From contig CM106586.1 of NCBI GenBank assembly GCA_048013815.1, positions 3,410,001 to 3,474,000 of the forward strand: a stretch of 64,000 nucleotides of DNA, given 5' to 3'. A program made the translations under genes and the position numbers. Numbering within the stretch: the first letter of the stretch is position 1; every line of letters begins with the position of its first letter. The stretch comes from Setoptus koraiensis. Taxonomy: Eukaryota; Animalia; Arthropoda. A model generated the notes under the pieces. That model did no database searches. It saw nothing but the letters and a program-made list of their open reading frames with translations, and had not been told where the DNA came from. Below are positions 33,627 through 64,000 of this stretch, piece by piece.

Positions 33627-33657
<31 letters not shown>

Positions 33658-34120: not shown

Positions 34121-34160
<40 letters not shown>

Positions 34161-35170: not shown

Positions 35171-35337
35171 TCGAGCGAATTAATTTAACTAACTGCGGAA
35201 AAACATTACCTCCCCTACCTTTCTCTCGATATATTCAACACAGGGGTGGCCTTGTTGCAGCAACTAGCCAAAGAGTGCTACCATTTGCAGTCTTCATCAT
35301 CGCCGTTGACGACGACCAACTCCACCACTAGTTAGTC

Positions 35338-39481: not shown

Positions 39482-39645
39482 CTCCGTTCAATTTGCCCGA
39501 ACCTAGATTGTGATTGTTCCCCGAAGAGCTAAATCTGAGATTTTCCCAAGCTTGTTGATAATTTCTGTACAATCCATTGTGTTCGCCGCTGGAATCAAAT
39601 GTTGATATGGTTTGCGCATCTATGGAAGACCTGTTGCTTTTGCGT
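39453..39645 (-). CDS. Duplicated cytoplasmic exon of the lectin/sushi receptor (putative alternative or additional terminal exon)
   Basis: Intact CAACAG acceptor and an open frame (R)RKSNRSSIDAQTISTFDSSGEHNGLYRNYQQAWENLRFSSSGNNHNLGSGKLNGATGWASSRI*, paralogous to the exon starting at 42639. Confidence 0.5.
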
Positions 39646-40382
39646 CTGTTGTATAGCGATGTAATGTGATGATGAGGTTGACAATCGACAATAGAGTGAC
39701 AATTCGCATTAGATTACTCCTTTGATAATCTTTGAATATTTGGTTGTTGGTGGTAGATTGATTATTGAGATTATGAGATTTTTGTGTGTTTGTTTGCCAA
39801 TTTGTTGCCAATTGCCGACACACGACGCTAAATCTGAGACGTCAAATCATGTCAATTTAAAACGCTAGATACAGGAAAAAACTCTCCGGAGCCAGATCAC
39901 AAACTATGGTCAGGGATTTGCCAACTATACCCACTCGCCGAACTCGAACAATAAACAAAGTGTATTGCCCACTTCTTCAGTCTCAAAACTCGACTTCACG
40001 CCATAATTTACACTCTAATTAATTGACTCTGCAGTAGTTTTTTTTTAATTTCATATTATTATTGTTATTGTTGATTTATTTATTATTGTGTCATTGGGAG
40101 CACTGTCTAGGGACGGCAGTAGTAGGGGACATCATTTCATCAATTTAAGTTTGCGCGTTCTGAAGATTCACATTTAATTCTCATTCTTTCTCATCAATGT
40201 TTTTAGCTTATTTACATAATAATATCACCTAGTAGCACCAGCAGCGCCAAAACAAACAAACAAACAACAACTAGACAAACTAGAATATTTGCCTCAGGTT
40301 AGGATAATGATGACGACGACTGAAAAATTATTATCATCCAATTTAATAGCTTGGTATGTCGGTGATGAGCTACAACGTGACA
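39466..40382. repeat. Segmental duplication A, copy 1 (direct copy of 42460-43379)
   Basis: Near-identical over most of its length, with an offset of about 2994-2997 bp. Substitutions cluster at the left end. Confidence 0.97.
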
Positions 40383-41709: not shown

Positions 41710-41834
41710 TTGTACTGATGGGCCCCTAGTGCCGAACATGATAAGTGTGTTGTTGTTTGGTGTGACATGCCCGTATTTGTTTCCGTTTGTCCGGGTCGCT
41801 CGCCATCAATCGCCAAAACAATACGTGTCAATTA

Positions 41835-42639
41835 TCAATTATACCTGTTTGCTCTGTTTCTCGGAGATGAAGAATGTTGATTGAGCGCTGTCGGTGACCA
41901 TTGTGATGTGTAAGGAACGTGATCCAACGAATGATCGCTCGGTGGCGAAGCACGCGACGATTGTGTAGTGGACGATGGCGTTGAAGCCGACGACTGATTG
42001 TGATGATTGCTCATTAGGCCCACCGATCTACCAATAGAGTTTGTAGAATATATGCGCTTGTTTGCCAGATTCATCACCTGTCCGGCGGCTCTGTCCTCGT
42101 TGGAACGTGAATATAGCGCTGCAACGTCCGCATTTAGTGTCAGCTCATTTGAATCTCTGAAGCCCTCATTAACGCCGTGATGTTGACCATTGTAGCCAGC
42201 TCCTCCTGTATAACTGTATTTTGTGCCACCGCCGGCATTACCGTTTGCGCCATTGTGATGCAAATGGTGCTCGCTGCCACTTGTTTGCGACGATGCACTG
42301 CCTGGGCTACCATTAGAAGAATTCGACGAATGCTGATGATGTAACAATGATTCTGTTCCGTTATGATGATGATTGAGATGATGATGGTGATGGTGAAGCA
42401 GTGTCGATGGCGTTGTAAAGTGATGTCCGGTATTATTTGAACCGTCGTTCATTGTGCCGGGAGCGCAACCAATGGCCCCGTTCAATTTGCCCGGACCCAG
42501 GTTGTGATTGTTGCCCGACGAGCTAAATCTGAGATTTTCCCAAGCTTGTTGATAATTTCTGTACAATCCATTGTGTTCGCCGCTGGAATCAAATGTTGAT
42601 ATGGTTTGCGCATCTATGGAAGACCTGTTGCTTTTGCGT
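41835..42639 (-). CDS. Lectin/sushi receptor: main cytoplasmic exon (His/Ser/Asn-rich tail)
   Basis: Phase-2 CAACAG acceptor matches the TM exon donor. Reads RKSNRSS...YQQAWENL... and ends at RYN* (41835) or at a weak AG|GTATAA donor (41845). Confidence 0.8.
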
Positions 42640-43379
42640 CTGTTGTATAGCGATGCAATATGTGATGATGAGGTTGACAATCGACAATAGAGTGACAATT
42701 CGCATTAGATTACTCCTTTGATAATCTTTGAATATTTGGTTGTTGGTGGTAGATTGATTATTGAGATTATGAGATTTTTGTGTGTTTGTTTGCCAATTTG
42801 TTGCCAATTGCCGACACACGACGCTAAATCTGAGACGTCAAATCATGTCAATTTAAAACGCTAGATACAGGAAAAAACTCTCCGGAGCCAGATCACAAAC
42901 TATGGTCAGGGATTTGCCAACTATACCCTTTCGCCAAACTCGAAACAATAAACAAAGTGTATTGCCCACTTCTTCAGTCTCAAAACTCGACTTCACGCCA
43001 TAATTTACACTCTAATTAATTGACTCTGCAGTAGTTTTTTTTTAATTTCATATTATTATTGTTATTGTTGATTTATTTATTATTGTGTCATTGGGAGCAC
43101 TGTCTAGGGACGGCAGTAGTAGGGGACATCATTTCATCAATTTAAGTTTGCGCGTTCTGAAGATTCACATTTAATTCTCATTCTTTCTTATCAATGTTTT
43201 TAGCTTATTTACATAATATTATCACCTAGTAGCACCAGCAGCGCCAAAACAAACAAACAAACAACAACTAGACAAACTAGAATATTTGCCTCAGGTTAGG
43301 ATAATGATGACGACGACTGAAAAATTATTATCATCCAATTTAATAGCTTGGTATGTCGGTGATGGGCCACAACGTGACA
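42460..43379. repeat. Segmental duplication A, copy 2
   Basis: Direct copy of 39466-40382. Confidence 0.97.
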
Positions 43380-44461
43380 CCTACTCTGCTACTTCGTCTA
43401 TTTCGTGTAACACTAATAATTGTAGCCAATAAATAATGTACATAGACAAGGGCGATGATAATAACGGTGTTGTCGACGTGATAAACGTGATAATGACACA
43501 AGGTGATGGTAGAGGAAAAGAAGCAATAGATGATGATGTTAATTGTTGTGTACAGAGATAGACAGAGACAGACAGAAACAGAACGCTGATTCTTAGCTGG
43601 AAGTGGAAGAGAGTGTCAACGTTATAGGCTACAGAGACAGGTCTGATGAGAGTTTCGACAGCTAACTGAGTTGAGGGACCCACGGGCAGATGCTGAGAGA
43701 GCGAGGCAGATTCAGAGAGCCGGAAGTTGAGTTTGAAGCTTGGAGAGCATGCCACGGAAAGCCCACATGCAGCCATGGTGATATATGGGGGCGTGCAGGA
43801 GAGAGGTTCGTAGAGTTGGCTGTGAGTTTCAAAGTCCAACACCGGATGTATACGCTTGCATACATCCGGTGTTGCGTAACTCAAGTTAGTGTGAGTGTTA
43901 TACAAGAGTAGTTGTTATATCTGGTCTGAATTGTAGCGTGCTCGCCCGTTGATTGTCTAACTATTGTATATTGTAATATAAATATATATTTATATATAAA
44001 TATTCATATATATATATCGATCTCTATGCTACTGCTGTCTCTGAGATTAAATTATTAAATTCACCGTTATACGCACTGAATAGAACGCTCATTTACATCT
44101 CACTTGTAATGAATAATTTGTAATAATAAAAAAAATAATAGACCCATAGAGATGATAAAAGCCACTCGTCACAGAATAGATACCCCAATCATACAAATTG
44201 TGCGTGTATATTTATAACCTGATCAACATGCTTCATTGTTATTGTTATTGTCAGACCCAAATCAAGGCTCCGAGAGAGTTTTTGCTGAGCGATCGTCTGG
44301 CTCATCACAGATACAGCAGACGGCAACTGAAAAAATCGCAAAGGTGCGAGGGAACGGGTTGGGCAATATCGGGTTGGGACCGGCGTGTCAGCAGCATCAT
44401 ATTGCATTGATATTACATTCGTTGATCGTATTTATTGGAATTATCCCTTGCGATTGCTTAC

Positions 44462-45779
44462 CTTTTGATTATGATCACTATTATGGTTATTATTGCACCT
44501 AAGAAAATAAATCCACCGAATATGGCCACGGCAAATATGCCCTCCAAACTGAATCTGGCCGAGGCCATATTCAGTCTGTTGTTGATTGTTTGTTGGGGTC
44601 CCGGCAAACTGTTGCTGCTCGACTGCATGTGATGGTGATGATGGTGATCTTGAACGGCGGACACGTTCAAATTGTTGTTGTTGTTGTTGTTGTTGACATC
44701 GTGATGCTGCCTGTCGCTATTGTGATGACTGTTCAACGGATTATATTGTGACTTTACTATAACGGGCTGACTCGGGCTGGCCAGTGAGGCCGACGAAGAA
44801 GCGGCCGACGACAAAATGTGCAGCGGAGTGTATTTGTTGTTGTTGTTGTTACTTTGCGCCGTTGAGCCGAACGGGGCGACAACTCTGTTATTGTTGTTGT
44901 TTGCTTGTTGTTGCAGCTGGTGCGAGCTTGGCGAATTGGTTGTTGTCGGTTGTTGCGGCAGCCTGTATCTTTGGGTGCTGGTATCGATTTGCGCATTTGA
45001 GTTGTCTTGTGCTTGTGTTGTGGTTGTCGTGGTTGTAGTTGGCATAAGTTGGGCATTGTTGCCAGTGTTGTAACCATTTATGAATAGACCTGGCTGCTGA
45101 TTGATTTGATTTGATGCGGGCTGTTGGGTGCTCGCCGACGATATGCTGCCAACATTTGATGACGCGCCCGTTGTTACGTGATGCTGCTGCTGAGGTGTGC
45201 TAGTAGTGTGAATATTGTTGTTGTTGTTGTTGTTGCTGTTACCTGTTGTTGTGCCAAAATTAGCCACACTGCCAACAGGTGAGGGGGGCATGTAGCTGGA
45301 CACACTGGTCGATTGTGAGGCTTTCCTGTTTTGCTGTTCGTCCTGTTGCTGCTGATTTGTTGCTGTTGTTGTTTGTACATTTGATGGCATGACTGGTCCG
45401 TTTATGGAGGCTGCCAGAATGGAATTAATTTGTTTCAAATCCAACGGTGTCAGCGTGTTGTGGCCCGTCGGTGGTTTATGGTGATTTGTTGCCGGTGAAT
45501 TGTTAATAGCAAACGCATTGGTGTTATTTGTTGTTGTTGTTGTTGTTTGTGATTGTGTGTTGGTAGCCATCATAGCAGCAGCCGACGGCGACAACACATT
45601 CAAGATATAGTGACGCAACATGGATGAGAGATTTATTAGATTAGATAAGGATAATTGCGATGGCTGCAAATTGGCCTCATTAGGGCCCATGCTGGACATG
45701 GCTGCTGCTGCTGCAAAATGGCTGCTCGTCGATGGCGCTCTCGATGACGACTGCTGTGTCGTCATCGAGAGCCTCCATA
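44462..45779 (-). CDS. Lectin/sushi receptor: low-complexity stalk plus transmembrane exon
   Basis: Long Thr/Asn/Gln/Ser-rich ORF ending ARFSLEGIFAVAIFGGFIFLGAIITIIVIIIK, then an AG|GTAAGC donor at 44461. The acceptor position (45779) is inferred from phase. Confidence 0.8.
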
Positions 45780-46482
45780 CTATGCACTCCATACTATGCA
45801 CTCCATACTGTAGAGTGACAGCCATAAAAACTGAAAAACATAACGGATCACATTGCATCACATGCGAATATTACATAATAATACAATATTCCAATGCGTG
45901 TGTGCGCTATGCTATTATCATAATAGTATTATGTGTGCTGGACGGCATTGTTACAATTGATCGGGCGCGTCAGTTACGTCATCGAGTTGCCAGCGTCCAG
46001 GCGACGGCGTTGCCAGTTGATGGGGGCAACCGTCAACAGTGTCAACTGTCAACAGCGTCAACTGTCAACAGCGTCAGCTGGAATTGCGGCCCGCCAAAAC
46101 AAACAGCGACAAACGAAACGATTGGTGTTTGTTTTTGTGGCCACTTTGGCTTTGGGGCCATTTAACTTTTCAAAAGTAAACCACTAATTGATGCCAATCA
46201 ATGGTGCGGCGCTGTCAACTCTCTGTTTCCATGGCGCCCGACCCAGTATAATGTGTCCCTGTGGCTGGGTGCGCATGACTTATGCTTATGCGATCACTTT
46301 GCGGATATTATCCGTCAGGTAATCGCATCCGATCGCTTATCGGGGTCATACAGCGGCACACAGTGCAGTGTTGGTTCATGCAAAACAGGCAGGCGATTAC
46401 CTGATAACATCAACATTGCATCATGCATGCTGTTGTGATGCTGTTGTTGCCGATATCACAGTCGTATTGTGCGTTTGGGTGC

Positions 46483-46560
46483 ATGCAACAGGTGAGATGC
46501 AACAGGCGAGATGCAACAGGCGAGATGCAACAGGTGAGATGCAACAGGTGAGATGCAACG
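46483..46560 (+). promoter_or_regulatory. 14-bp tandem array ATGCAACAGGYGAG x5 (Scratch/Snail-type site in three units)
   Basis: The repeat is seen directly. GCAACAGGTG matches the Scratch-family SELEX consensus. Function is inferred. Confidence 0.4.
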
Positions 46561-46743
46561 GTGCCCAAAAATACAATGCAACAGGCGCTCATTGACAGCA
46601 GCAGCAGGGCAAAAGGTATTGCCAATTGCAGCCAGTAGGTGACCTAGAATTAGCGCTGTTGTGTTAAATTAGATTATTATTTGCGATAATGCTAATCATG
46701 GTGGCAATTAATGACGACATGAGCAGCACCAACGGACGCCTAC

Positions 46744-47136
46744 CTATGGAATGGATTGATGACTGATGATTGTTGGCATTATGCGGGCTTGTTGCGCCAG
46801 CCTGAGCTAGAGCCACTCTGTTGGTGCCCGGCAACCTGTTATTACTGTTTACTATTGCGTCATTATTGGCATGGTTGTTGTTGTTGTTGTTGTTGTTGTT
46901 TGTATTTGGCGAGTGTGCGGTTTGTGTGTTTGCCAATGGATGCGGATGATCCGCCGTTATGGACGACACAGCATGCTGATGTTGCTCATGGTGGTGACCG
47001 TTGCCGCTACTGACCGCGGGAAACAAAACCGCGCCCGCTCGCGGCATGCTCGAGCTGACGGGCCGGGCGGTGGTGCTGGTGGTGGTGGTGCTAGTTGTGC
47101 TTGTGGTGCTGGTTGTTGTGGGCGCGCGCGGTCTCT
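46744..47136 (-). CDS. Lectin/sushi receptor: mucin-like stalk exon
   Basis: TTGCAG acceptor in phase with the preceding exon, ERPRAPTTTSTTST..., and a G|GTAGGC donor. Confidence 0.7.
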
Positions 47137-47497
47137 CTGCAATTACATAACATTGTATATATAAATATGACGTGCATTCATGCCAGGCGATCAACAATTA
47201 ATTAATGAATAAAATAATTAATTAATTGATGCGACGCGCGCGTTTGTTTCATTCGGGCCGACGGGTAACGGGTTTGGGCAGGTAGCGGACAGACGAGAAC
47301 AGACAACGGTTAGTTTATCGGCGGCTCTATGAACATGCTGAGCGGCACGTGATGCGAGTGACTTGTGGTCACCATGGGAGATCGGGCGACACGATGGGAG
47401 TTGGGGGACACGGTGAGAGATCGGGGCACGATGGTCGGGGTGACCATGGGAGATATCAAATAACAACATGGGAGATATCAAATAACTAGTAACTTAC

Positions 47498-48457
47498 CCT
47501 TGCAGTAGGGCGACTGGTTGTCCCAGAAGCCGTTGAAGGAGCACACGAGCAGGCGCTCGCCCACCAACTCGTAGCCGGGCCGGCAGTCGAAGGTGGCCTG
47601 GGTGCCCGTTATAGTGACATTGGACGACACAGTGACGTAACCGTTCATGGGAGGCGACAGGCCCGGGCAAAGGCGCGGCTCGCAGCGGGGCGGCGGCCCG
47701 TTCCAGCGTTCGTCGTGGTCGCACATAAGCGACGATTTTCCATACAATATGTAACCATCGTTGCAAGCATAATTAACATAACTCTGATATATGGTTGTGC
47801 CATTAATAAGCTTATAATCGCCATTGGCTATCATGGCCGGATAAGCGCAATCGACATAGCGACATTTGGGCGCATATTCCGAAAAGAAACCCGAAGCGAG
47901 ACAAGTGCGCACTTGGGGCCCAATTAAATGATTGCCTGGGGCGCATTTGTATTCAATCACTGTGCCTATTTCAACGTTGCGCGTTATTAGCGTAGAATTG
48001 GTGGGCTTCTCTGGCTTGCCACAACTGAGGGGCCTGTATTGACAGATAAAATTGAGATTGAGATTGCAGTCTGTGTCGGACCACAGCCAGCCCTTGCTAC
48101 CATCGAAACGCGAACAATTGTGCTGACTGGCGGGCGTGTTCCAAAAGGATATTTGCACATCTTTGCCACTTATCCATTTCCAGTTTTGGCCGTTGCGTTG
48201 ATCGCGCACCGCGCCCAACCAATACTGGCCAGACAATTGATCCTGTCTGTGTCGCCGGTACAATTCCCAGCTTAGGAAACCCTGCAGAGCGGGCGATGTC
48301 TCGTCGACGAGGGTGCCGCCGCGCACCTCGCAATACCGCCGGGCACTGTCAAAGTTTAAATTTTGATTGTTGTGGAATAGGTAACATTTTCCGTTGTAGG
48401 TGGCCGTGGACCCGAGCGGCTGGTCCCGGAACGAGGGGCACTGCTCGATGGAGAGCG
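47498..48457 (-). CDS. Lectin/sushi receptor (furrowed/CG9095-type): C-type lectin domain plus three sushi/CCP domains
   Basis: CYLFH...FDSARRYCEVRGGTL...YWLGA...WKW...WSDTDCNLNLNFICQY (CTLD), then CGKPEKP...YKC..G...RTC...PKC, CAYP...YAC..GY...WNGPPPRC and CPGL...FDC..GYELVG...WDNQSPYC. GTAAGT donor. Confidence 0.92.
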
Positions 48458-48602
48458 CTGCGCGCGACGGGGGCGTCGTCAAGTTTGATAAGATTCGGAT
48501 TGTATTCAGATCAGATTCAGATTGGATTCAGGTTAGTTTGGGCTGGTTGCGTCATCGGTTTTGTATGAGGTGTGGGCCTCTAGTGGAGGCTCAATCGCTT
48601 AC

Positions 48603-48824
48603 CGTGGTCGGTGAATATGAACGTCTCGCAAATGCTCAGCGGCACCCCGTGCGGGTCCTCCAGGTGTATGGAGACGAAGGCGCCCGGCGCGGGCCGGGTG
48701 CAGGGCAGGAAGAGCGGCTTGCCCTCCTCGATGAATCCGTGGTACCTGTTGCACACGGTGTTTGAGCCGATGTCGGGCCGGTTGTTGCCGACGCGCACCG
48801 TTATGGTGGCCTTCTTCTTGTTGG
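48603..48824 (-). CDS. Lectin/sushi receptor: F-type lectin (FTP) domain, C-terminal half
   Basis: ATITVRVGNNRPDIGSNTVCN...LFLPC...GAFVSIHL...LSICETFIFTD, with phase-1 junctions on both sides. Confidence 0.85.
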
Positions 48825-48849
48825 CTGTTTGTTGTTATTCATTATGTTC

Positions 48850-48959
48850 ATTGCGCAATCAGATTCATTGTTGCGCCATCAGATTGATTATTGCGCCATC
48901 AGTTTCAGTATTGCGCAACCAGTTTCATTATTATGCAATCAATTTCATCATTGTGCAGC
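48850..48959. promoter_or_regulatory. 20-bp-period array of C/EBP-type sites
   Basis: ATTGCGCAAT, GTTGCGCCAT, ATTGCGCCAT, ATTGCGCAAC and ATTATGCAAT at 48850, 48870, 48890, 48910 and 48930. Confidence 0.45.
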
Positions 48960-49908
48960 GCAATTGGCAGCGGACAGTTTGTTGCGGCGGGCAGTTTGTT
49001 GCGGTTGGCCGCGTTTGTGGGCCGATCAGACCAAAACGATATCGTTATGATGAAAGAAAGAGGGCGATTAATTAGCATTTGCATAAACATTTGCCATGGG
49101 CTGCTTGTGGCGGCCGGAACCAGCCTAATGCTACGATCAGTATTAATAATAATAAATTTGCGACTCTCTCATCATTGTTACGTGACCGAACTAGGGCTAA
49201 TTGATTGCGCACAGTGCGATATTGTGATCATATTATGTTGTTGATTATAATAATCATTGTTACAGTATCATTGTTATATCATGCACTTAGCGGCGGACGT
49301 TGTTCAGTTATGCAACCATAGCGCAAACCATTATAACGTTTATTACGGTGCAATCATTATGCAATCATTGCCGGCTATCTGCGCGATCTGTGAGCAGTTG
49401 TTGTTGCATAAATCATTGGGCATTTTCGCAACTGCACATACGGACGACCGGATGACACACGCTAATTAATCATCACAATGCACCGATTTATAAATTAAAA
49501 TTGCCAGATATTTAGCCGCATCGCCATTGAATTGATCTGGCTAAATATGTAATGATAACGAGGCCATATATCACCCCAAACAAGCGCCATATATTGCCAT
49601 ATATATGTGTGATGTGTAACAAGATAAGCCGGATATGCGATGATTGCGATCTGGCGCTGGACAGAAGGCGCGCCTCGCGGATCGGTCACAATGCTCGCGG
49701 TTATGAGCGCCTATCGGCGCAGCCGCACTGCAAATTACTCCAATTTCGTCCGGCGGTGCAAGTTATCGGCGCGTCGGACACATGGGCGTGTCATCGTCGC
49801 AATTATCGGCGGTCGAAATCTTGCCGCGAGCGCCCGACAACGAGATACATCGGCGGCCACATACCCGAGCGGGTGATTACCCAGTCGGGATAACAAGTTG
49901 TTACTTAC

Positions 49909-50121
49909 CGCAACATCCGGTTCCAAAGTCAATGCGCACTATCTGCACCAGGTAGGGCTCCAACAGGTTGACGTACCACCACGGGCTGGCTTCGGCGTCG
50001 GTCATGGTGCATGTGGAGCTGGCGAAGTATTGCGACGTCTGGCCGTCGACGGCCTTCTGAGCGCTGCCCATGCCCGCCGTGGACGATTGCATGGCCGCCT
50101 TGCCGAGGCCCACATTGAGCA
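49909..50121 (-). CDS. Lectin/sushi receptor: F-type lectin (FTP) domain, N-terminal half
   Basis: LNVGLGKAAMQSST...AQKAVDG...CTMTDAEASPWWYVNL...VQIVRI, the typical FTP start, with a TAATCAG acceptor and GTAAGT donor. Upstream exons were not found in the window. Confidence 0.87.
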
Positions 50122-53100
50122 CTGATTAGGTTGTACGGTGCGGTGCGGTTTCATGGTGCGGTCCCGTTGTGTTGTTGCGGTCCGGTTGTGTTGTTGCGGT
50201 CCGGTTGCGGGCATCGGGTTCGGTGAATCCGTCGGCGGTGGGGTGCGCGGGGCATCGCGTCAGGTGAGGCAAAACAAACAATTGTGATTGTGATTAGTGG
50301 GCTGCAGTTGGGGCACAAAGTGAGTGAGTTGTGAGTCGGGCGACTGACCAGTCTGCTGTTCGTTCGTTAGCTGTTTATTTATCTATTTACTTGCGTGTCG
50401 CTCATTCGTTATCAGAGAATCGCCGACAATCCACGAATCTGCGACGATTCGCGGCTCGCCGACATACCGCGGGTCGCCTCGATTCCAGCAAGTGCAAGTC
50501 CGATGACGCAACCATCGGCAATTAGCTCGGCATCGCTCTCATTATCTGTCCGAATCGGTCGGCCAGTCACTCGGAGGAGTGTCGCGAGAGAGTGATTTGC
50601 GCCGCACCACAACAAATGCAAATCGCCAAATCGCCAAGCTCCCAGACTGCCGAACCATGTTCAATGCGGCCCGCCGTCCGTCGGCGGCCGACGGGATTGT
50701 GTGCGGCCGTCGCGTCGCGGAATTCGTACGACAACACGGCCGTTCGGGGGCGATTGTTTGCGCTGTCATGTTTGCATGTTTGCGTTGTTTAATTGCGCAT
50801 TTGGCAGCGCTTGTTTTGGCAGCTCTCAGGCGAACTTTGCAAACAACACACCGGCGTTACATAACTGCCTTTGTTGTTGTTGTCGTTGTTGCTGTCGTTG
50901 TTGCTGTCGTTGTTGCTGTTGTTGTTGTGCACCGTTATCAAGCCAGCGTTACGTAATCGCGTCACTCGAGCAGCAAGACAGGCCAAAACAAGAAAACAAG
51001 GGCTTGTTGAGAGAGTGCCACTTGACCAGTGGCGAGTGCTGCCAGCTCGCAAGCTGCACCGTCCCGGCCGGCGCCGACTGTGACCGCCGCAACAGGCTGG
51101 CCGGGCGACTATTTTGCGAGCATCTCGCGGGCATTTCGCCAGCGTTCTGCATGCGTTTTCCGAGCGTTTTCCGAGCGTTTTCCGAACATTTTTTCCAAAC
51201 ATTTTCCGACTATTTAGCGGACGGCAGGCAAGCATGCAAATCGAAGCCCGTCCCGCGACCGGCGCCACAGTTGCAGCGCGGCCAGTTCGCGACCGACAGA
51301 CTCCAAGTGCCGCAAACAAGCGCAACGACGACACCGACAACAAATCATCTAATCATGCCAGCTAAAATAATTATACCTACACACGGCCGAGTGACACAGG
51401 CACGGCCAGCGGTCAAGCCCGCCGCGGTGACCGCTGCAACCGGCGGCCGCAGCCGGTCTCCGCACACAAGCCCGTCTCCGCGCACAAGCCCGTCTCCGCG
51501 CACAAGCCCGTCTCCGCAGTGTGGCCAGCTGGCCAGCCTGAGAGTTGCGCCGAGACTCGCCACTCGAGGGGAGATGTTCGCACAAGATACTCGCAGCAGC
51601 GTCTCAGCGAGCGGTCGGTGCCGGCCAACGAGGCCACAGGCGACACACACTGGCCAGCGACGTCCGAGTGGCGCGTCTTCCGGGCATCGGGACGCTCGGG
51701 CGGGCGGACGCTCCGACGGCGGGACGTTCGGATATCGCCAATTTGGCATCGCAAATGCCGATCGGTCGGCAGCTGCGCGAGCCTGAATTGGTCGGGCCGG
51801 CCCGAGTAACGGCACTGGAGCTGCAAACACTGGCCGCACAATCGGCGCCTGTCGTCGGCGCGATAACGGCCAGTGGCGCAAGCGACCATAACGGCGGTGA
51901 CGGCCATGACGGCCATGACGGGACGGGCGCGTAATTGCGGGTTGCCGTCGGGTGTCACCCTGTCAATATGCATTGTGCGTTGGCATGTTTGCGCGGCTGT
52001 CCGCTGGGCGCTCTTGCCCGCGCTCGCTGCGTCGGGCGAGCTTGCGGCTCGCACACAAATCGCTTACCAATCGCAGCACTCGCCGGCATCGATCGCCGCC
52101 GTTACGTAATTCATCTTGGCCGGACGCAAGCTGTCAGGCGGCGCGCAATCACACATGATACGATGACGGTCGGTGTGCGATCAGCGCGGCGCGATCGTCG
52201 GCTCGCCGACCGGCAATCAGACAAGTCAGACATTTATCAAATATACAAAATGTTCGGGCTGCCAACGGGCGCCGACCGGCCACAGTTAGCGGTCGGCGAG
52301 CGCCGTCGCAGCGGCCGTCCGACAGCGTCCGGCACTGTCCGGCACTGTCCGGCAATGTCCGAGAATGTCCGAGCAAGCTGCGCCAGCGAAAACGGTGCCG
52401 ACGAGACCCGGCGACGGGAAGGCGCACGGCGAGGCCGGCAGCCGTTCGGTGACGGGCCAATTACACAAATATAATTATATAAATAAACTGAGCAAAGGTA
52501 AATAAAAGTATATATTGCCGCTGTCCCATATTCGCTGGCCGGCTCGGCACGGCTGCTGGATTGCGGACGCAAGTGGCCGCAAATTGGAACGCTTTTGCTT
52601 GCGTCGAATTCGCTTCGAATTCGCTTCGAATTTGCTTCGAATTCGCTTCGAATTTGCTTCGAATTCGCCTCGAATTTGGCAGAGTTTGCTTCGAGTTCGG
52701 CAGTTTGCTGCCGATTGCGATCGCTCCGGCGCCGATCGAACGCCGATCGATGGCCGCCCGAGGCGGCCCGTAGCTGACCCGTAGCATATGCTGCACGGCG
52801 CGGCGAGCCGCGCCGGTGCTTGCGAGCGAGGCGACCATTCACTCGCAATTGGCTATGCTGGCAAGCAGTCGCAAACTGGCGCCAACATCGAGTTTGAAGG
52901 TTCGACTCCTCTGGGCGCTGCCGCCGACCGGCCTGCTGTCGAGCGACCGGCCGACCGGCCGAGGGCGCCCGAGCGGGCTGTCCGCTGGGCCGCCGATTCA
53001 GGGTCAGCCGTGGGCGCCGCGCACAAGTGGCCCGGCGTGCCGTACCGTGGGCTGGCCGCTCCGTTATTCGGCCATCGTCACTCGTCACCGTCGTCCGCTC

Positions 53101-56100
53101 GTTGGCTCGTTGGCTCACACCGACCGACTGACCGCGCCAGGCGACGGGCCGAAGCGACCCACTGATTGCGCAAACAATATCTCGTATTACGCAATGGTTA
53201 TCAGCGCAAGCAAGCTTCGCGCTGGCCACTATGACGCCAGTATTGGGCAAGCGTTGCGCTGGCTAGTATGTGTTGGGCAAGTATTACGCAAGTGTCAGTT
53301 TCAGATTGCTCTGGCACAAGCGCCGTGTGATACAGGGACGAGCAGAGTTGCGCAATTATAATTAGAACACACACTAATAACAATAATAAAGATAATGTAT
53401 TACGTAACCGGCGTAACAGGTGAACATTGTTGTGCGATTGTGTGCGTGCGTTGCAAAAAATTGCAACACTCTTCTTGTTGCATCACTGACACTGACTGTC
53501 AGTGATGTGTGTGTGTGTGTGTGTGTGTGTGTGCCTTGTGGGGCGCACCCATTTGAAAGTTTCCCGCCGGAATGAACAAAACGCAACAACATGTTACATA
53601 ATGACGCCGTTATGTGCGCCGTTTGGTTGGGGGTGCGCCGGCGCGCATCCACTGTCGACTGATGCAATGCAAAACTGAACAATTGCGCTTGTTGCTCGAA
53701 TTTCGACGTTGGACTTTGTTGGAATTCTGGCGAATTCGAGCCAAGCGGTCACTTCGTCGAATGTTCGCTTGTCCGACGCACACTAAAAGGGCCAATGCGA
53801 GCAAACGAGACAGCGTCACAGACCCAGATTTTCTCAATGTGGCCTTTATCGGCCGGCCAGCATCTTATCTGCGCCCGTTCATCTCATCATCGTTTGGCCA
53901 AGACTTTGTGCGAATTGTAGACTCTCCAGACTGCGCACAATGCTTTTGCGCTGGCTTCCTGCCGCAAACATGCGCCACAACATTGCTGACATGAGTCGCG
54001 TTGCGTAACACGAATCCCGTTGCGCAACGCATGGCTGCTGTTACGTAACGGCAACTGGCCGCCGTAGCCGCTCAAAACGCTGAATGATTTGGCGAGCGCC
54101 CGAACTGCGATCAATATCCGCCGGGCACATCCGCCGGGCAGCGTGTCGGCCGGCCCGATAGTGAGCGAGGGCACTCTCACCACTGTGCTGTTGTTGTGCG
54201 CGCCGCGCGCGCTGACCACTGACAGGCGGCACAGACAGGTAACACAACAGGTAAATCTGAGTGATTGGCGCTCGATTATAAAGCGGATTATGCAACTGGA
54301 GTGGCTGCCAGTGATTTGTGTGGCGATCAACGGTGTGTGCGTCACTGTGCGAGTTGTGCGAATGTTTGTGTTGGACACAAGCGCACAAACATGAATGAAT
54401 GGACGCTCGACGAGCCTGGCTGCACATGGCGCGAAGGCTGCACATGGCGCGAAGGCTGCACAGAGCGCACAGCCTGCGCACAGGTGAGATAAGCCGTTCA
54501 TGGCGAGCTATATATAAACAGTATATATATAAACAGTATATGTATATAAACAGTAGCGGTCGGCCGGGCTCACGACTGGCGATAATGAGCCCGGCCGAGC
54601 GTTGGCAGTGTGCGAATCACAGTTACCTGTCAAGGTGAGCGCCAGGGATGAATCTTTTAATCAGCGAGCTACCTGTCGCTGGCGCCGCTGGTGTCGCTGG
54701 TGTGAGTCGTGCCCGACACTGTTCACAACAACAGTGACCGCTGAACAGCGACCGTTGAACAGCGACTCCATGATGTAATGTTCAACGGCGACTGTCGAGC
54801 AAATTCGAAGCTCACGACCGCTCCGAGCGAACGCAACACCGACAGTGGCCAGTGGCCAGTGGCAGCCGATGAGCTGCACAGCGGCAAGGTCAGCATTAAT
54901 TAGGCTACCATCGGCGCCAGTTGAGAATTGGCCGGCCAGATTAGAATTAGATAATGGTCGATAATTTGTTTTGTTTGCCCATGTTTGCCATACAATATTT
55001 GCCATTACAGTCTGGCAAACATTTGCAGCATTTGCCGATTTTATATGCTGCCAGTTATCTCTGCGTGTTGCATTTTTGCATTTTTGTATCTGGCAACGGG
55101 CCGGCCCGTCGCGACGGGCCGGCCGAGCCCGATCAGATAATGCTCGCTCGCTGCATAACACTGGCAGCAGCCACGCGGCTCGGCACACAAGCTCGCCAGT
55201 CACGACTTTGGCCGCTTCGTTGGCGTCTCCGTGTCAGCGCCACACCTGTTCGCCTGTTGCCGCCACTCACCTGGCGAGTTAGCTGGCTGGTTGGCCGGTC
55301 GGTTGGCCGGTCAGTTTGCCAGTTTGTCGAGCCGAGAGTCTCGTCGCCGGTCGGCCGGCCAGTTGACTGGCCGGTGCCGCCGATGCGCTGCAAGCAACAG
55401 GTCGCTATCCAATCAATAATTGGCGATTGAGGTGAGCACAACACGACCCATCGATGTGTCGATCAATTAACGCTTCGCTCAATGTCTCTCGCCTCGGAAT
55501 CGCCGGCCGCCAAATCTCGGGCCGGTCGCGGCACCTCCAACAATCGGCTCTGTTTGCGGCCGCTGGCTTGATGAATCTGGGCGCTCACATCATGATGGGC
55601 TCATGTGATTCATATGATACGAATGGAATTCACGCGATATCAATGAATTGGCATTCAATGAATTGGCCCATTCAAATTCAAGTTTATTTATTTGGCCATG
55701 CAAATCATGATCACGATGACGGCCACTGACGAGATGTTATCGCTATCTGTCGAGTTGAAACTTTCAGCAGGCCCAAAGCGCAAACTTCGGGCCGTCTCCG
55801 GGCCGCACACTTTCGAGCGGACGGTCCTGAACTTGGCAGCGACTCGATGCCGTCCACTGGCGGTCCCCTATTTATATCCGTTCATCTGGCCACATAAGTA
55901 GCGCTGCGAATGCAACCGATCTACTGGCTCGCCACTGGTGAGTGACCAGTGGCCAGCGGTGGCTCGATGCTGGATAGCGCAATTAGTTGTGTCCACTAAT
56001 GAGCGATCGGAGATCAGTTTCTCTCACAACTTTGTGCGCCTTTTTCCACTTGAGCATTGCGCAATCTGCAGCTCGCTTAACGGTCGTTTTAACGGGCTTT

Positions 56101-58590
56101 GCGAATGCAAGTGTCTCATTAAAATTTATTTTTTATTTTTATCCACGCCAGCACGCCGACATATACAAGTGTATAAGGCCAAAATAAGGCAGCTTGCGAT
56201 GGGCCACCCTTTGGCTCAATGCGCTCCGGCTGGCACTGTAATTAACTGCAATCAACTGTAATCAACTGTTGGCCGCGTCAATTAATTATTGCCAATTGTT
56301 GCTCGATTGTGTGCGCTCGATTCGAAGGAGTCACAAGTGCACAATCGAGCTAGAACTTGGGGCGTTCGCGAAATTGAAAATAACTTGCAAATAACTGTCT
56401 CGATACTTGATTGGACTGCCAGCAAGAGTGCGTTAGTTTGACGCTGGCAGCGCCATTAATCGGCATCAAGCGCCAACGGTGAGCTTGTGTTCGGAGCGAT
56501 CGTTCGAGTGGAGTCAACAAGTGGCTCAAATTGGGAATGAGAATGCCAATCAATTAACTCATGCGACACGCCGCGCTGCCGTGCTGCCGTGTGAGAATCA
56601 ATATGAGCTAACGGCTAACGGCGTGGATACTTTACTGGACTGTGGCCACTGTGTTATTTATCTGGTTCGCGAAGCCACCGATCGACGCGAAGCCACCGAT
56701 CGGCGAAACTCATCAGCGACAAGCAATTAAATGTGTGACTTTTATCAGGCGACAGATCAAACAAACCAGCCAGCGAGCTATTTTTGGATCGCGCTCGCCC
56801 TGTCAGCTCGCCCTGTCAGCTCGCCCTGTCAGCTCGCCTCGTCAGCTCGCCTCGTCAGCTCGCCTTGTCAGCTCGCCTGCCCCGTGAGCTCGCCGGGCCA
56901 ATCGGCCCTGATTGGCCGCACAACCCGGCCGTGCAACCCGGCCGCATGAGCTAGGTCGCCGAGTCGCGGTCGCCGAGTCGCGGTCGCCAAGTCGCGGAGT
57001 CTGCAAGCGCCGATGCGTCCGCGGGTCTGTGTGGCCCGTTGGCCGCTTCGTCGGTTCGTCGGTTCGACCGAGTCCGCCCGAGAGTCCGCTCGAGACTCTC
57101 GAGTTGAGAGTGTGTGTGAGCTGGACAGTGTGACCGAGTGTGCGCCAGCGGGACCGTTTACTGCCGGTGGCGAGCATTGATTGACCATGTTTAATTAAAC
57201 ATTTCGAGCGCTGCTCATTGTCCCCGTTGCCGTCGCCACAACACAGCAACGACATCAGCAACAGCAACATCATCAACATCAACATTGGCAACAACATCAA
57301 CGACAGCAACAGCAGCGACAACAGCAGCAACGGCAACCACAGCAACCTGTCCGACGCCGGCCCGATCGAGTGGCTGGCAGCGGCGCGCAGCCAATCAGCG
57401 AGCTGCCAGCAGACGGGAGGGGGGCAAAGTTTTTTTTTGTAATCCGTTGCGTAAATGCTGCTTGTTGTGTGCTCATCATTATCATTGACAGACCGACTGA
57501 TTTCTTCGCTCTCTCTCTAACAATCTCTGACGGTTCGAACGGCCAACGGCGGAGAATCTGGCAGTTCGAACGGCCAACGGCGAAGAATCTTGCGTCGCGA
57601 ACGGCGAGCGATGCCGAGCGATCTCGACCAGTCAGAGCGTGAGCGATGCGCAAGAAGAAAAAGTGGTCAGTTGGCAAGCGAGTGTGTTACATTGTTGTTG
57701 TCGCCCGGCCATGAGCTCAACGGTGTTCAAACACATAGATGCCATAGATCCATGAGCAGGCCACTGTGGCGCCGCATGCTCGCCCGACCGTTCGCCAGGT
57801 GAGCGGCCTACCTGTTTAGGTGCCCGTTAGTGCGCCACTCGCCCGGCCGACAGGTAAGCGTGGCGAGCGGCGAGCGGTGATCGCAAGTGCTGATGGCAGC
57901 GCCAGCGCCAAGCGTGGACCAGGCGATAACAATAATGAGCCAGCTAATAAAATGGCAACAACAATGGCGCCGCCAACTGACCCACTTGCCCGGCTCGCAC
58001 ACTCATGAGCGACATGAGCGAGTTTGCATTGCAACTGACCTATGGTCAGTTTGAGTGGCGTCGCAATGAGCGGCCGTCAATAGTGGCCACATTGACACTG
58101 ATTATTGGCGCTGCTGGCCGCTGCTGGCCATCACTCGATGAGCTGGCCATCACTCGTCGAGCTGGCCAAGCTCGCCGAGCTGGCCAACACTGGCAAACAA
58201 GTCGCAAACAAGTCGCCCATCATCACACTCAATCCACTCATAAGCTACACAGCTCACCTGTGCTGCCTAGCTCACCTGTGCTGTGTCTGGCAACGGGCAC
58301 AACAGTTTGCGAGCTGTCGTGCCCGCCGCTAACGGGCGATGCGATCGCCGGCGTGATTGCATCGGCGCCAATTTACAGTTAGTCAAACACTGGCAAGCTC
58401 ATTGCGCTGTTTGCCGACTGTTTGATTTGAGTGCTGCTTGGCCAACGGTGATGCCACCATTGTGATGGCACAATGGCACAAAATGGCACTTGCTCGGCAC
58501 CAAAACGCAGCAACATTTTGGAGAGTCGCTCCTTTTTGAGTGTCGCTGCTAATTAACTCTCGCTCCGTTGCAGTCCATCGGCCGGCCGGC

Positions 58591-59959
58591 CAAACCGACA
58601 ACAAACCGACAACAAACCGACAACAAACCGACAACAAACCGACAACAGACCGACGACAGACCGACGACAGACCGACAACGGCGAGCATTTGACCACTTTG
58701 CACCGACAGTGCGCCGTCTAACCGTTTAGTTTAGTAACCGACACACTCTCTCGCCGGAGTCTCGCACAAAGTCGCTGTCGATGATGACCGACGATGGCCG
58801 AATGACCCAACGACCGACACCGTTTGCTGCTGGCCGAAATGGTGCTCGAAAGGCTGCTGCTGCTGTTGCCGCTGCATCAGTGAATGTAATCAGTGATGCA
58901 ATATCACTCACTATACTATAACTATGCCGCAATTGCCACCGTTGGTCTCCATGATGATGATGCAATTATTTGCGGTTATCGCGCGCATTATTCATTATAC
59001 GTTACAACGTTGTCGTAATATGACTGTCATATTATGACCGGCAGTCATAATATGACAACATTATTCAAACATTGCGCCGTTTTGGCACACTCGCTTCATC
59101 GGGCCCCCGCAATCAGATGACTCAATCACTCATCAACTGACTGTCAGTGTTACTGACATGTCATGTAATGATGTAATGATTCATTTGGTGCGATGGCACC
59201 GCAATGTGAGCCCACCAACTGACCGGCCAATACGACACAAGCCAAACAAAGGCAACCTTTCGACACTGTGAGCGCGTCAGTGTTGCTCGGCTCTAGCGTC
59301 TTGCCACTGCAGTGGACACACAATTGGCAACAAGCTGCCACCCGACAGACGCTTGACCCAATAAGTTGTGTTGCGTAACAAATGTTATGCAAATGTGAGC
59401 CGGCGTGCGCAGCATCACAACGCATTGGCATTGCTTGAGATTGGCTGGCAGAGAATTGAGACAAGTGCAACTTGCGCAATCAAACAAGCGAGTGTAAACA
59501 AGTGTAAACAAAATGGTCGTTTGTGCCACTCGACTGCGTGCAAACAATGCCGCTACAATGACCATACATCCACAAGTGCGTAATGGCGCGGCTCACCTGG
59601 TGGCTCATCAGCTCATTGATGAGCATCGATCAGCTGCTTGTGACAGCGACGATAACATGCGACCATGGCACCACTTGAGCCGGCAAGCTTGCGACGGTGA
59701 GTTGTGAGTGGCCAATTTGGGCCGTATTAATAATCGCGTATTACATAATATATTATTATTAATTGTTGTTGTTTACATTCGATATTTACACATTGTTGGC
59801 AGTGGCAACAACAAGTGCCCACTGGGCAATTTCAGCTTTGGGCTATAATAATAAGTTATTATTAATAACATTTCGAAAGCTTCCACATGCCCACTAATAG
59901 TTAAAAGCTAACTAATAGCGGCCAGTGTGTTTGTGGCGCAACATTTTGTTGTTGTGTTG
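58591..59959. repeat. Duplicated segment B, copy 2, beginning in an (AAACCGACAAC)n minisatellite
   Basis: Homologous to 40383-41709 in the same orientation. Confidence 0.95.
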
Positions 59960-61850
59960 CATAAATTGCAGCGTGCTTTAACTGGCTGATGGTGGCCGGC
60001 GGTGGCCAGTTGTCGCCAGTTACAATTAACTCGATTATGGCCACTCGGCTCACTCGGTCGGTTGAGGTCAAGCGGTTGCGCCCCCGCACCAGACAATAAT
60101 AATAACACAGCGCACAGTTAATTACACGTAAACAACATTGTAAACAGCAGCATGCCAAGCATGTGAATGCGTTTATGCAAAGCAGTCGAGTGGCTCACCT
60201 GAGTGCCAGCAGTGATAGCATTTGTTGTTGTTGTTTATTTGTTTGTTGGACATGTCTCGAGATGTATCTTGCCAGATGAGAGGCAGTGCAATATGGCGAC
60301 ACGGCTATGCGGCAATGAGCCAATGACGCAACAGTTGACTGTTAGGTGGCGCCAGCATTGTTTTGTCAGCATGCATGAGGCATGAGAGTGACTGTAGAGC
60401 GGTTGTTGCTGGCAACATTGCGCAACGCACCATGCGGGAGTAAACATTGTTGTCGCTAATTGAACAACAACAACAACCTGTAACAATAGTGACGCCGGCC
60501 ATTAAACGGGCATCGGATGGGACCACCAGCAACGAGTTGATAATGTAATAATAGCCGGCCGGGCCGGATTAGGCATGAACGTCGGGATGAACATTGGAAC
60601 GAGCATTGAAACGAACATTCGAATGAACATTGAAACGAACAGTGAAACGGCCATTCGAATGAACATTCAGACTTTGCAATAACTGTTACTGCAAACGATT
60701 ATTTATAAACTGTGTGCGCAACTATAAATACAGTTTATTAGCTCATTATCCGCGGCTAAGCTGTGCGTGGGCGACCGCACTTGTGGGCCGCGCTGAAACT
60801 GATGAAATTAATTATGTAACTCTACTCACTCATGGCAACATGACTAACAGCGCAACTGATAACATCGCACAAGCGGGCCAGCGATGCAACTTGAGCCGAT
60901 CAGATGGCGCTGCACGTTGGTTGCAATTTGTTAGCGATTTGCCGGAAATTTGGCAAGCTCGGTAAGCTCGGCAAGCTTGCCAAGTTTGCCAAGTTTGCCA
61001 AGTTTGCCTGATTTGCCGTCCAACGGCCGACGGGCAACGGGCACACAGCTTGCGATACAAGTGGCCAGCCTTGTGTCGTTACTAATGGATACACGGCTGA
61101 AAATGTCGCCGAAAATATTTTCAACTATCACACATTTTCAACATTTACATAACAAATTAAATGTTGTCAAATATTCAGGTCGAGCAGAAGAGCCAAGCCA
61201 GAGATTTGGCGACAAGTTTCAACAGTGTAATTGTGACATGTTCGGACAGTGTAATTGCGACGGGCGGTGTAGGTGGCGTGACCGTCATCAATCATGATCG
61301 GCTATGCTAATTTATTTGTTGGTTTTCCATTATTATCAATGCCAATTTGTCGCCAACTGTTGACACGGCCGCTGCAAATTGATACGGCTGCCTCGAATTG
61401 ACACCAGAAACCGTTTACAAACTGACCATTTGTTTGGCGCTTCAGCTGATTTGTGGTGGCCGGCGCATCCGCTTTGCGCCACATTGATGCGGGTGCGGGT
61501 GTGCGGGCCGTCGACGGGCCGTCGACGAGCAACCTGGAAACAGGAAGTGGACGCGTCGTGTGATGCGGGCAACTGCCACCGCAACCGATACTAGCGAGTC
61601 GTCGGGCATCGCCGAGTCAGCGGCGGGTATTGCCCAATGGTGGCCACTTGTGGCTCCGAATTGAATTAATTCGAACTTCGAAGGAATTATTCGCTGAAAT
61701 TATTTGCTTATCAACGATGAGTCACCATCAACAGCCAGTTGCCAGCTTTGCTGACCCAGACCCAGCTGAGCTGACCTTGCCCAAAACCGTCACGCTGCAA
61801 CGTGATCTCACGTGACCGCTGCGCTGGCAGCTATTTCGTATTCGTATGCT

Positions 61851-61900
61851 GGTTGCGTCATTTGGCGTCATTTGGCGTCATATTGCGTCATGTTGCGTCA
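61851..61900. promoter_or_regulatory. 10-bp-period array of GCGTCA (TGACGC) half-sites, three as TTGCGTCA
   Basis: ggttgcgtca tttggcgtca tttggcgtca tattgcgtca tgttgcgtca, read directly. Confidence 0.4.
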
Positions 61901-63680
61901 TGTTGCTTCGCTTGGCTCCCTGTTGCCGCTGTCAAACAATTTGGCGAGTTAGCCGAATTGACATTGAATGTATATATTATTATATGTCATATTATGTAAC
62001 GCTGTAAATGTTGTGCCAAGTATGACACTGCTGCCTGCCATATGATGCAATATTGTTGCAAACAATTATCAGCTGAGCAGATCAGCAGCACGGTTGCATC
62101 ATGCAGCGACGACAGCGCACTGTCGGACAGTGCGCTGTCAGCTGATGCAGCCGGTGCACCACCAAATGTGTTGTGGTTGTTGTTGCACTTGCTCGCTCGC
62201 CAGGCCAGTGTCAATGGCCTGGCGAGCGAGCTTGCGGCGCCAAGATGCGCCAACACTGCATGGTTGCGTCATTGCGCCAGTGCGACATTGCGACATTTGT
62301 GGCAGTCGGAAACAGGCTCTTCCGACTGACTTCACTTGCTGCCAGCAGCGCCAACAAGTAAAGCCAAACGAAGCCAGCGAAATTGCGAACAGCCCAAGGA
62401 GCGGAAAAGATTGGCTCGTCGGGCGGCTCGGTCAAGCCGCCGACCAGCCACAGCCGAGTCGTATGCGAGTGGCCGACAAGTGCGAGGGCGCTCGCAAAAA
62501 CTGAGCTCGGCACGACTGGCCGCAGCTCGAAATTGTGGCTAATCTAATCTGAGCAGTTCGGTGATTTATGATCCATGTCACTGTTGCGCCGGTTGTCATG
62601 GCGACGCAGCCTCGGCACCATCGCACCATCGCAACAGCGGCACCAACAGCAACAGGTGAGCCGGTCGCAAGCGCCGCTGCTGTGAGAAGAAGCGTTGCCA
62701 AAGAAATTGGCCGAGTTGCGGCTCGTTGCCGGCGGCTTGCGGTGCCCGTATGGGCACCGCGGTGACGGGTGCCGCCATGGAAACGAGCGCAAATGAAAAC
62801 AAAACAAGCGCCTCGTGACGACAACATTGTGACATTGTGCAATGATGACGCAATTGTTGCCCGTTCCCTCTTTTTGCCGGCCCGTTTCTCTTTTTTGCCG
62901 GCCCGCTCCCTGTTGGCGAGCTCACGAGTCGTTGCGTTAGCTGCGCAGCCTGGCGGCCTCACCTGTCGCCTGTTCTAATGGAGTCGCCTGTTCCAATGGA
63001 GAGTCGTGGTCAACAGGCGACAGGAGAAGCCAATGAGTGGCCGCACTGGCAACGCGCGCCGCCACTGTCGACACGACAACATGTTGGCAGCATGGGTACA
63101 AGTGCACGACAGGTGAACGGGGTTTTTTGCAAGTTGGTGCAACAAGTTGGCCGAGAAGAAGTTTTTCAACTTGTCAACTGGTTCAATTTCTGCGCACTGT
63201 TGTTGTCGCCGTCAATGGGCACAAGATGCACTCTTGCAGCAAGACTCTCGCAGCAACAGGCAGTCATTTTTGGTGGCGCCAGCGTTCACGGCTTAACGGC
63301 TTTACGGCACCATCGAGCGTATCATCAATTAGAATTAGCCACTTCCGGCTGACCAGTTGTTGCACTGGCGCTCACTGTCCTGCCGCTAATGTGTTTAGAC
63401 CTATATGCTGTCACGGTGTTACTATCATAGTATTGCTATGTGATTCACATAATGTGAACGAGTGTGTGCGTGTGTGTGTGTGTGTATTAATGGCGCCAGT
63501 TAATTAACAATTGACAAGCCAGTCGAGTTTATTGAACTCAAACTGGCTAATGAGCCAACCAACTGGCCAGTGACCAATGAGCCGGCTAACGAGCGAGCGC
63601 ATTCACAATGGATGGCGCGCACAATTTCGGCTGCAGTCAGCTGAGTCGCCGCTTGCCGGCTACATTGTGCCGCAACAGTA

Positions 63681-63762
63681 TGCAACATTATGTAACAATG
63701 TGCAATGTTATGTAACAGTGTGCGACGTTATGTAACAGTGTGCAGCATTATGTAACAGTGTG
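63681..63762. promoter_or_regulatory. 20-bp tandem repeat carrying four PAR/E4BP4 D-boxes (RTTATGTAAC)
   Basis: Exact matches to RTTAYGTAAY at 63687, 63707, 63727 and 63747. Confidence 0.5.
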
Positions 63763-64000
63763 GAACATTCTGTGCATTATGTGCGGTATCAACAGTATTT
63801 ACAGTGCGCACAGCGTGCAGGATACATTTGTGCGGACCTCCGAGTGCGCTATGGAATCCATAGTCGATTGTCGCCAGCACAGGTGAGCCTCTGGCCGGAC
63901 AATTGACAGCAATTGCCTATTGACCTGCTCACAAGTTGTCAGTTGTTGTGCCACACAACTTGTGTGTGTGTGTGCAAAGAACAATTGCATCGGCACGGAA

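Follow-up and report, generated by a model that had tools for sequence, protein, structure and literature searches.

We found that the introns of a receptor gene in the mite Setoptus koraiensis carry a dense field of the palindromic decamer RTTAYGTAAY, the D-box word of the PAR-domain and NFIL3/Vrille (Vri) classes of bZIP transcription factors. The field lies in a 64,000-nucleotide stretch of contig CM106586.1 (GenBank assembly GCA_048013815.1, positions 3,410,001 to 3,474,000; hereafter the window), of which it occupies positions 45870-63756 (hereafter the domain), and the first 45.8 kb of the window served as the comparison part. With a probability of about one half, the domain represents a lineage-specific field of putative bZIP-responsive intronic enhancers or silencers of the receptor gene that hosts it; dimers of Vri/PAR and C/EBP type would be its readers in trans, and it would grow by microduplication. 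We favour this reading because the excess lies in the exact consensus with its R/Y flanks and in words specific to bZIP proteins; selection on the sites, their occupancy by protein, the identity of the bZIP that binds them and the host gene as their target are parts of it that we infer.

A pattern search of both strands matched exactly all 15 of the RTTAYGTAAY positions (45870, 47142, 50856, 50948, 52101, 53399, 53593, 54040, 59740, 60811, 61991, 63687, 63707, 63727 and 63747) for which an initial annotation, made by reading the letters, had claimed at least 15 sites. The same annotation had seen about three in the first 45 kb, and just three distinct sites (6775, 18925 and 19061) were found in the comparison part. 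The window as a whole gave 23 strand matches, as against 1.16 expected and a maximum of 6 in dinucleotide-preserving shuffles. Since the domain is GC-rich (50-60%, compared with approximately 40% in the rest of the window), an AT-rich word should be rarer there. Markov simulations of order 1 and order 3, trained on the domain alone, predicted 0.13 and 0.28 sites, respectively, bracketing the hand estimate of about 0.2 in the annotation and ruling out a compositional artefact; for the first 45.8 kb, where three are present, 0.5-0.9 sites were expected. Perfect decamers in the domain are thus approximately 60- to 100-fold over chance. Four of the 15 are copies within a single 20-bp tandem array (63674-63773), leaving 12 independent origins and still an approximately 50-fold excess.

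The excess is one of exact sites. Specifically, the domain contains 15 perfect and 18 one-mismatch sites, whereas 0.17 and 3.7 are expected from composition, so that perfect and one-mismatch sites stand at about 1:1 instead of the 1:22 or so given by chance; in the first 45.8 kb, the numbers are close to expectation, at 3 against 1.05 for perfect and 24 against 19.4 for one-mismatch sites. Ten of the 18 one-mismatch sites carry a change from T to C at position 7, from T to G at position 3 or from A to G at position 4, and the changes at positions 7 and 4 (seven sites) convert a GTAA half-site into GCAA. The flanking bases (-1/+1) follow the same pattern, being R..Y on 15 of the 16 TTAYGTAA cores in the domain (binomial p = 1e-8), or on 12 of 13 when the array is counted once (p = 6e-7); in the rest of the window, three of eight TTAYGTAA octamers are flanked in this way. 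The enriched unit is the full decamer, not the octamer core.

The words that accompany the decamer are of related types. Counts of all 136 TTNNNNAA octamer classes in the domain are headed by TTATGTAA (12), TTATGCAA (9), TTGCGCAA (8), TTACGCAA (5) and TTACGTAA (4), the last tying with TTGCCCAA and TTAATTAA, and these five form the PAR/NFIL3 and C/EBP set, built of GTAA and GCAA half-sites. Under the order-3 model, the excess is approximately 67-fold for TTACGTAA, approximately 23-fold for TTATGTAA, 7-fold for both TTATGCAA and TTACGCAA and 3.6-fold for TTGCGCAA, and the control words one step away, TTATATAA, TTAGCTAA, TAATGTAA and TTATGTAT, show no enrichment in the domain. When all 8-mers of the 48.5-64 kb segment were ranked, TTATGTAA came first, apart from a (CA)n microsatellite and CAGGTGAG. 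The remark in the annotation that related C/EBP-like decamers are frequent also holds, with RTTGCGYAAY found nine times in the domain and twice in the first 45.8 kb, and TTATGCAA nine and four times; in addition, TGACGCAA occurs nine times and TGATGCAA eight times in the domain. In mouse liver, chromatin immunoprecipitation sequencing (ChIP-seq) of DBP and E4BP4 ranks TTATGCAA first and TTATGTAA second in preference in vivo (PMC6687812), so that the two commonest octamers of the domain are the two words most preferred by these factors, and the weaker variants #3 to #6 of that study are not enriched in the domain.

A second word, CAGGTGAG, is also overrepresented, with 14 occurrences in the domain against two in the first 45.8 kb, and 11 against 0.46 expected in 48.5-64 kb. 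It is present on both strands with unrelated flanks, within 46489-63887 (e.g. at 50261, 54481, 55266, 57796, 58253, 58271, 59592, 60194, 62653, 62958 and 63880). This word is a Snail/ZEB-type E-box and also resembles a 5' splice site.

PAR- or C/EBP-type octamers form groups at the sub-kilobase scale, at 48.85-49.40 kb (seven), 53.16-54.05 kb (nine) and 59.37-60.42 kb (seven), together with the array at 63.69-63.76 kb. The densest mixed cluster (53160-54050), with nine such octamers in 0.9 kb, contains TTGCGCAA at 53166, 53348 and 54020, TTACGCAA at 53187 and 53284, TTGCGTAA at 54001 and D-boxes at 53399, 53593 and 54040, and also holds CARE-like TGATGCAA words at 53478 and 53660. Elsewhere, the D-boxes are more scattered: ATTATGTAAT (45870-45879) lies in the intron separating two 3' exons of the receptor gene, GTTATGTAAT (47142-47151) is directly upstream of a 3' splice acceptor (ttgcag), a pair at 50856 and 50948 surrounds a TTG microsatellite (50856-50957), GTTACGTAAT is at 52101-52110, and the segment 59740-62000 contains dispersed D-boxes at 59740, 60811 and 61991, a near-site at 61144 and several TTATGCAA or TTGCGCAA words. 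A further TTATGCAA site, TTGCATAA on the gene strand, is located at 49357-49364.

Three tandem arrays in the domain each multiply one bZIP-type word: a 20-bp array of 5.4 copies with ATTGCGCAAT-type C/EBP palindromes (48850-48957), in the intron between the two exons that encode FTP domains; a 10-bp array of 5.5 copies (61852-61906) of GTTGCGTCAT, that is, TGACGCAAC, an ATF/C-EBP-type composite word; and the 20-bp array of five copies at 63674-63773, in which four copies have an intact RTTATGTAAC D-box and the fifth is degenerate. In the last of these, six changes were counted over 50 spacer positions, compared with none over 36 non-degenerate site positions, nine in each of the four sites (Fisher p = 0.03), a contrast that is weak evidence of either constraint or recent origin. 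A similar spacing of 19-21 bp separates the neighbours 53166/53187 and 54001/54020/54041, which belong to no array and have unrelated spacers (three pairs); approximately 20 bp is about two helical turns, placing dimers on one face of the DNA.

Apart from the copies in the tandem array, the sites have unrelated sequences in the 30 bp to each side, and degenerate copies within 45 bp of the dispersed sites numbered four as against 4.6 expected, with no excess; the sites are therefore neither a family of transposable elements nor recognisable remains of old arrays. Together with the simulations above, these comparisons answer the concern, raised in the annotation, that the density might be a compositional or repeat-family effect: it is neither. 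With no Rfam, tRNA or Pfam signal in the intron as well, a repeat or transposable-element origin was ruled out.

The receptor gene that hosts the field, of furrowed/selectin-like type, is encoded on the minus strand. Its exons comprise two low-complexity 3' exons (44458-45861 and 46664 to about 47135), an exon with one C-type lectin domain and three sushi repeats (47478-48482; Pfam Lectin_C 1.6e-13, Sushi 1.9e-28), and two FTP (F5_F8_type_C_2) exons, of which the first seen in the window lies at 49908 to about 50140 and the second at 48598-48830. Both FTP exons are kept in the contigs of relatives and the splice sites are canonical, and the segment from approximately 50150 to 64000 constitutes a large intron upstream of them. 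The lectin/sushi exon is related to proteins named P-selectin-like, CTLSE2 and SVEP1-like, and the order of FTP, C-type lectin and sushi domains is one that we take to be that of Drosophila furrowed. The annotation had described the stretch as non-coding and placed the sites in introns of a lectin/sushi gene: the first statement has to be amended, since receptor exons lie within it, and the second agrees with the exon mapping, with all 15 D-boxes intronic and 13 of them in the large upstream intron. Searches of that intron with Rfam, for tRNA genes and with Pfam (intron open reading frames, ORFs) gave no match, and a protein search with the translated 361-codon intron ORF at 50701-51786 returned zero relatives. 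Hidden coding content in the GC-rich 50-58 kb segment was therefore rejected, its long ORFs having no Pfam match and the one searched having no relatives.

In the closest relative (L005; 92% protein identity and approximately 85% exon DNA identity), the TTGCATAA site at 49357 is positionally conserved, the only bZIP-type site found to be so, in an intron between the FTP exons that is otherwise barely alignable. A strain variant at 49360 (T>C) changes TTATGCAA at this site into TTACGCAA, one bZIP word into another; the only divergent run (X5, also filed as X6) covers 48800-50734, with 15 substitutions and two indels, a range that holds zero D-boxes. No RNA run was found to contain this DNA. The ATTGCGCAAT array (48850-48957) is absent from L005, and a 14-bp array of 5.9 copies with CAGGTG, ATGCAACAGGTGAG at 46483-46563, corresponds in L005 (approximately 3840-3870) to a single copy, TCACCTGTTGCAT, indicating that arrays in the window arise by recent duplication of pre-existing conserved words. 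In flies, binding-site clusters have been documented to form through local duplication (PMC3188502). Approximately 200 kb of partly redundant DNA from relatives contained just three distinct RTTAYGTAAY sites, one of them in a coding exon. Because the checked sites are mostly not conserved and distant relatives lack the field, we regard it, by these sequence comparisons, as lineage-specific at the sampled depth.

Under the proposed mechanism, the sites would be predicted high-affinity targets of dimeric bZIPs, with RTTAYGTAAY and TTATGCAA representing the PAR/NFIL3 class and TTGCGCAA and TTACGCAA the C/EBP class, and selection would keep them at exact consensus. They would act as homotypic and heterotypic clusters, serving as intronic enhancers or silencers of the host gene, and their candidate readers, acting in trans, would be the NFIL3/Vri protein and/or any PAR-domain, Giant or C/EBP partners encoded by the genome. 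New sites would come in part from tandem microduplication of 10-20 bp, which would leave roughly two helical turns between neighbours, all on the same face of the helix, and the field may be one case of a habit of the long non-coding domains of this genome.

Several observations weigh against this mechanism. An excess of 60- to 100-fold in perfect decamers far exceeds that known from ordinary enhancers, and something besides conventional enhancer selection may be at work. Neither the D-box at 45870 nor that at 47142 is conserved in L005, and no D-box or C/EBP octamers were present in the 2.4-10 kb upstream of the receptor gene in four more distant relatives (L003, L006, L008 and L014). In addition, the contigs of the close relatives (L001, L005 and L015-L017) all end 0.3-1.5 kb upstream of the FTP exons, short of the 14-kb intron, which seems to be hard to assemble in these relatives too.

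Of the alternatives, the one that survives best, though we consider it unlikely, is that the field is a non-functional by-product, recent non-coding growth by short tandem duplication or biased mutation having multiplied or made bZIP-like palindromes without selection for binding. It would account for a domain full of 8- to 22-bp tandem arrays, three of which multiply bZIP-like words, for the absence or single-copy state of the window arrays in L005, for the lack of conservation of most checked sites and for the relatives whose short upstream regions have no field. It does not readily account for 11 dispersed perfect decamers with unrelated flanks and no degenerate copies beside them, nor for a perfect to one-mismatch ratio of about 1:1 where 1:22 is expected, nor for enriched words that are exactly those of bZIP dimers, R/Y flanks included. 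Moreover, intron divergence from the closest relative is near saturation, a distance over which neutral sites would be expected to decay.

The readers might instead be C/EBP or ATF-C/EBP heterodimers, with D-boxes merely tolerated variants, a possibility to which we assign a low probability. The counts of TTGCGCAA (8), TTACGCAA (5), TGACGCAA (9) and TGATGCAA (8) in the domain speak for such readers, as do the 20-bp array that multiplies ATTGCGCAAT and the 10-bp array that multiplies TGACGCAAC. However, the strongest excess lies in GTAA half-sites (approximately 67-fold for TTACGTAA and 23-fold for TTATGTAA, compared with 3.6-fold for TTGCGCAA), and such half-sites are generally the preference of PAR/NFIL3 factors and not of C/EBP. 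An architectural role, in which the palindrome would mark long gene-poor domains for insulation, silencing, replication or chromosome organisation and be read by a bZIP or an unrelated protein, appears a little less probable still. The great size of the excess and its spread over the whole domain, beyond a few modules, speak for such a role; nevertheless, no known architectural protein uses this word, the sites group at the sub-kilobase scale, and the co-enrichment of C/EBP-type and hybrid words and of the regulatory-looking CAGGTGAG is more like that of ordinary combinatorial enhancers.

The initial annotation had also pointed to a vrille gene nearby, and in this it was right. The ORF at 35338-36696 on the plus strand encodes a bZIP protein (Pfam bZIP_2 6e-17) whose named relatives are NFIL3 and vrille of mites, ticks, spiders and insects, the nearest being those of astigmatid mites, and an alignment of its basic region, YWDRRRKNNEAAKRSREKRR, matches human NFIL3 in the solved complex PDB 8k86 (E = 7e-20). 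Judged by domain, relatives and alignment, the gene is a true NFIL3/Vrille orthologue, and its product is a plausible candidate reader of the sites in trans. The further suggestion that the field acts on or through the adjacent vrille gene was not borne out. In four relatives (L009-L012), the neighbours of vri are DUF747, RpL36e, a zinc-finger gene and glutamate synthase, in L013 it adjoins Ge1 and a teneurin, and in L001 neither vri nor the prenyltransferase gene was found downstream of the receptor gene; the vri-receptor neighbourhood was not found in any relative examined. Within the window, vri and the field are kept apart by a prenyltransferase alpha gene, a further ORF and approximately 9 kb of receptor exons, and the 3.3 kb upstream of the vri ORF (32047-35337) contains no D-box and no canonical CACGTG E-box. 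In Drosophila, vri is a direct E-box target of CLK/CYC. The notion that the field belongs to the regulatory landscape of vri, for example through autoregulation via distal D-boxes in the introns of a neighbour, can appeal to the distance of 9-27 kb between the ORF and the sites, to a product predicted to bind exactly RTTAYGTAAY and to the general frequency of D-box feedback in clock circuits, but we consider it very improbable in view of the adjacency missing from every relative checked (L009-L013 and L001), the intervening genes and exons and the D-box-free region upstream of vri. It seems that vri, 9 kb from the field, is a neighbour by accident, and its nearness should not be read as a cis link.

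Among known systems, the field matches the D-box, or PAR-bZIP/NFIL3 element, by its word, its variant spectrum and the predicted cognate factor encoded beside it. The circadian D-box (V/P-box), recognised by DBP/HLF/TEF, Pdp1 and NFIL3/E4BP4/Vrille, has the identical decamer, and the window encodes a factor of NFIL3 type whose basic region is conserved. Near the promoters of clock and output genes, however, circadian D-boxes are found alone or a few at a time, whereas the receptor introns contain 15 decamers, accompanied by over 20 related words, across a field of at least 18 kb; rhythmic control belongs to the known system, and nothing in the field points to it. C/EBP and C/EBP-ATF composites (ATTGCGCAAT and TGATGCAAT/TGACGCAA) are also enriched and are multiplied by two arrays, but the C/EBP-type words are less enriched than the GTAA-type D-boxes.

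The same palindromic decamer is known from arthropods as the NRG element, RTTAYRTAAY, located approximately 200 bp downstream of the start of insect oxidative phosphorylation (OXPHOS) genes (PMC2241641; PMC6086935) and also termed the 'OxPhos motif', TTAcgTAA (PMC6086935). Like the field sites, NRG elements are typically intronic. They usually number one to a few, however, and are positionally conserved over long times, whereas the checked field sites are not conserved, the host encodes a cell-surface receptor, and the sites are numerous, extend over 18 kb and lie far from every known start. In addition, TTATATAA, which the NRG consensus permits, is not enriched in the domain. Identity with the NRG element was ruled out by the lectin/sushi host, the 18-kb spread and the lack of conservation of the checked sites. 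The homotypic clusters of developmental enhancers, which can form by local duplication (PMC3188502), resemble the field in their sub-kilobase clusters for a single factor family, tandem microduplication and spacing of approximately 20 bp, but reach a few-fold excess within modules of 0.5-1 kb, in contrast to 60- to 100-fold over 18 kb with a perfect to one-mismatch ratio of about 1:1.

The genes in the window and in the contigs of relatives are nearly intron-free and tightly packed, and one of these contigs came from a plant metagenome, as would suit a streamlined, eriophyoid-like mite. The published eriophyoid genome, that of Aculops lycopersici, is 84% intronless, and vrille, Clock and cycle are kept in it, with Pdp1, period, timeless and cryptochrome not found (PMC7738191). 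If Pdp1 is likewise absent here, Vri would be the main reader of the D-boxes. A broader proposal, which we put forward only tentatively and think rather unlikely, is that the PAR/NFIL3 D-box, kept in exact consensus, microduplicated and perhaps read mainly by Vri/NFIL3, has come to prevail among the cis-regulatory words of the few long non-coding domains left around neural and developmental genes in this streamlined lineage of mites. If the genome resembles that of A. lycopersici, one repressor-type bZIP might gate a large part of its developmental and neuronal genes. If functional, the field would be an unusually clean natural regulatory domain, composed almost entirely of exact-consensus sites of one transcription-factor family, in which the birth of sites by tandem microduplication is visible in a genome with nearly all other non-coding DNA purged; the mite would then suit two questions, namely why some loci resist streamlining and how one bZIP class became so widely used.

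Several minor observations were made in and around the domain. On the plus strand at 63851-63890, approximately 95 bp downstream of the four-D-box array, an ATG is followed 32 nt on by CAG|GTGAG; a plus-strand transcript could begin with this putative exon, in which case the array might act as its proximal promoter element. An 11-bp array, TCGAATTCGCT (6.6 copies, 52604-52676), is joined to differing flanks in the contigs of several runs, and the short array is therefore also present elsewhere in the genome. Between the FTP exons, a 24-nt block, TGATGATTAATTAGCGTGTGTCAT (49452-49475, minus strand), with a TAATTA homeodomain-type core, is perfectly conserved in L005. An exon-like stretch of L005 (7178-8146) matches two places in the window, 39469-39775 and 41831-42771. 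In the comparison part, the D-boxes at 18925 and 19061, 136 bp apart, lie in a 3.3-kb non-coding block upstream of a gene with spectrin repeats and RhoGEF and PH domains (Trio-like, 20835-25256).

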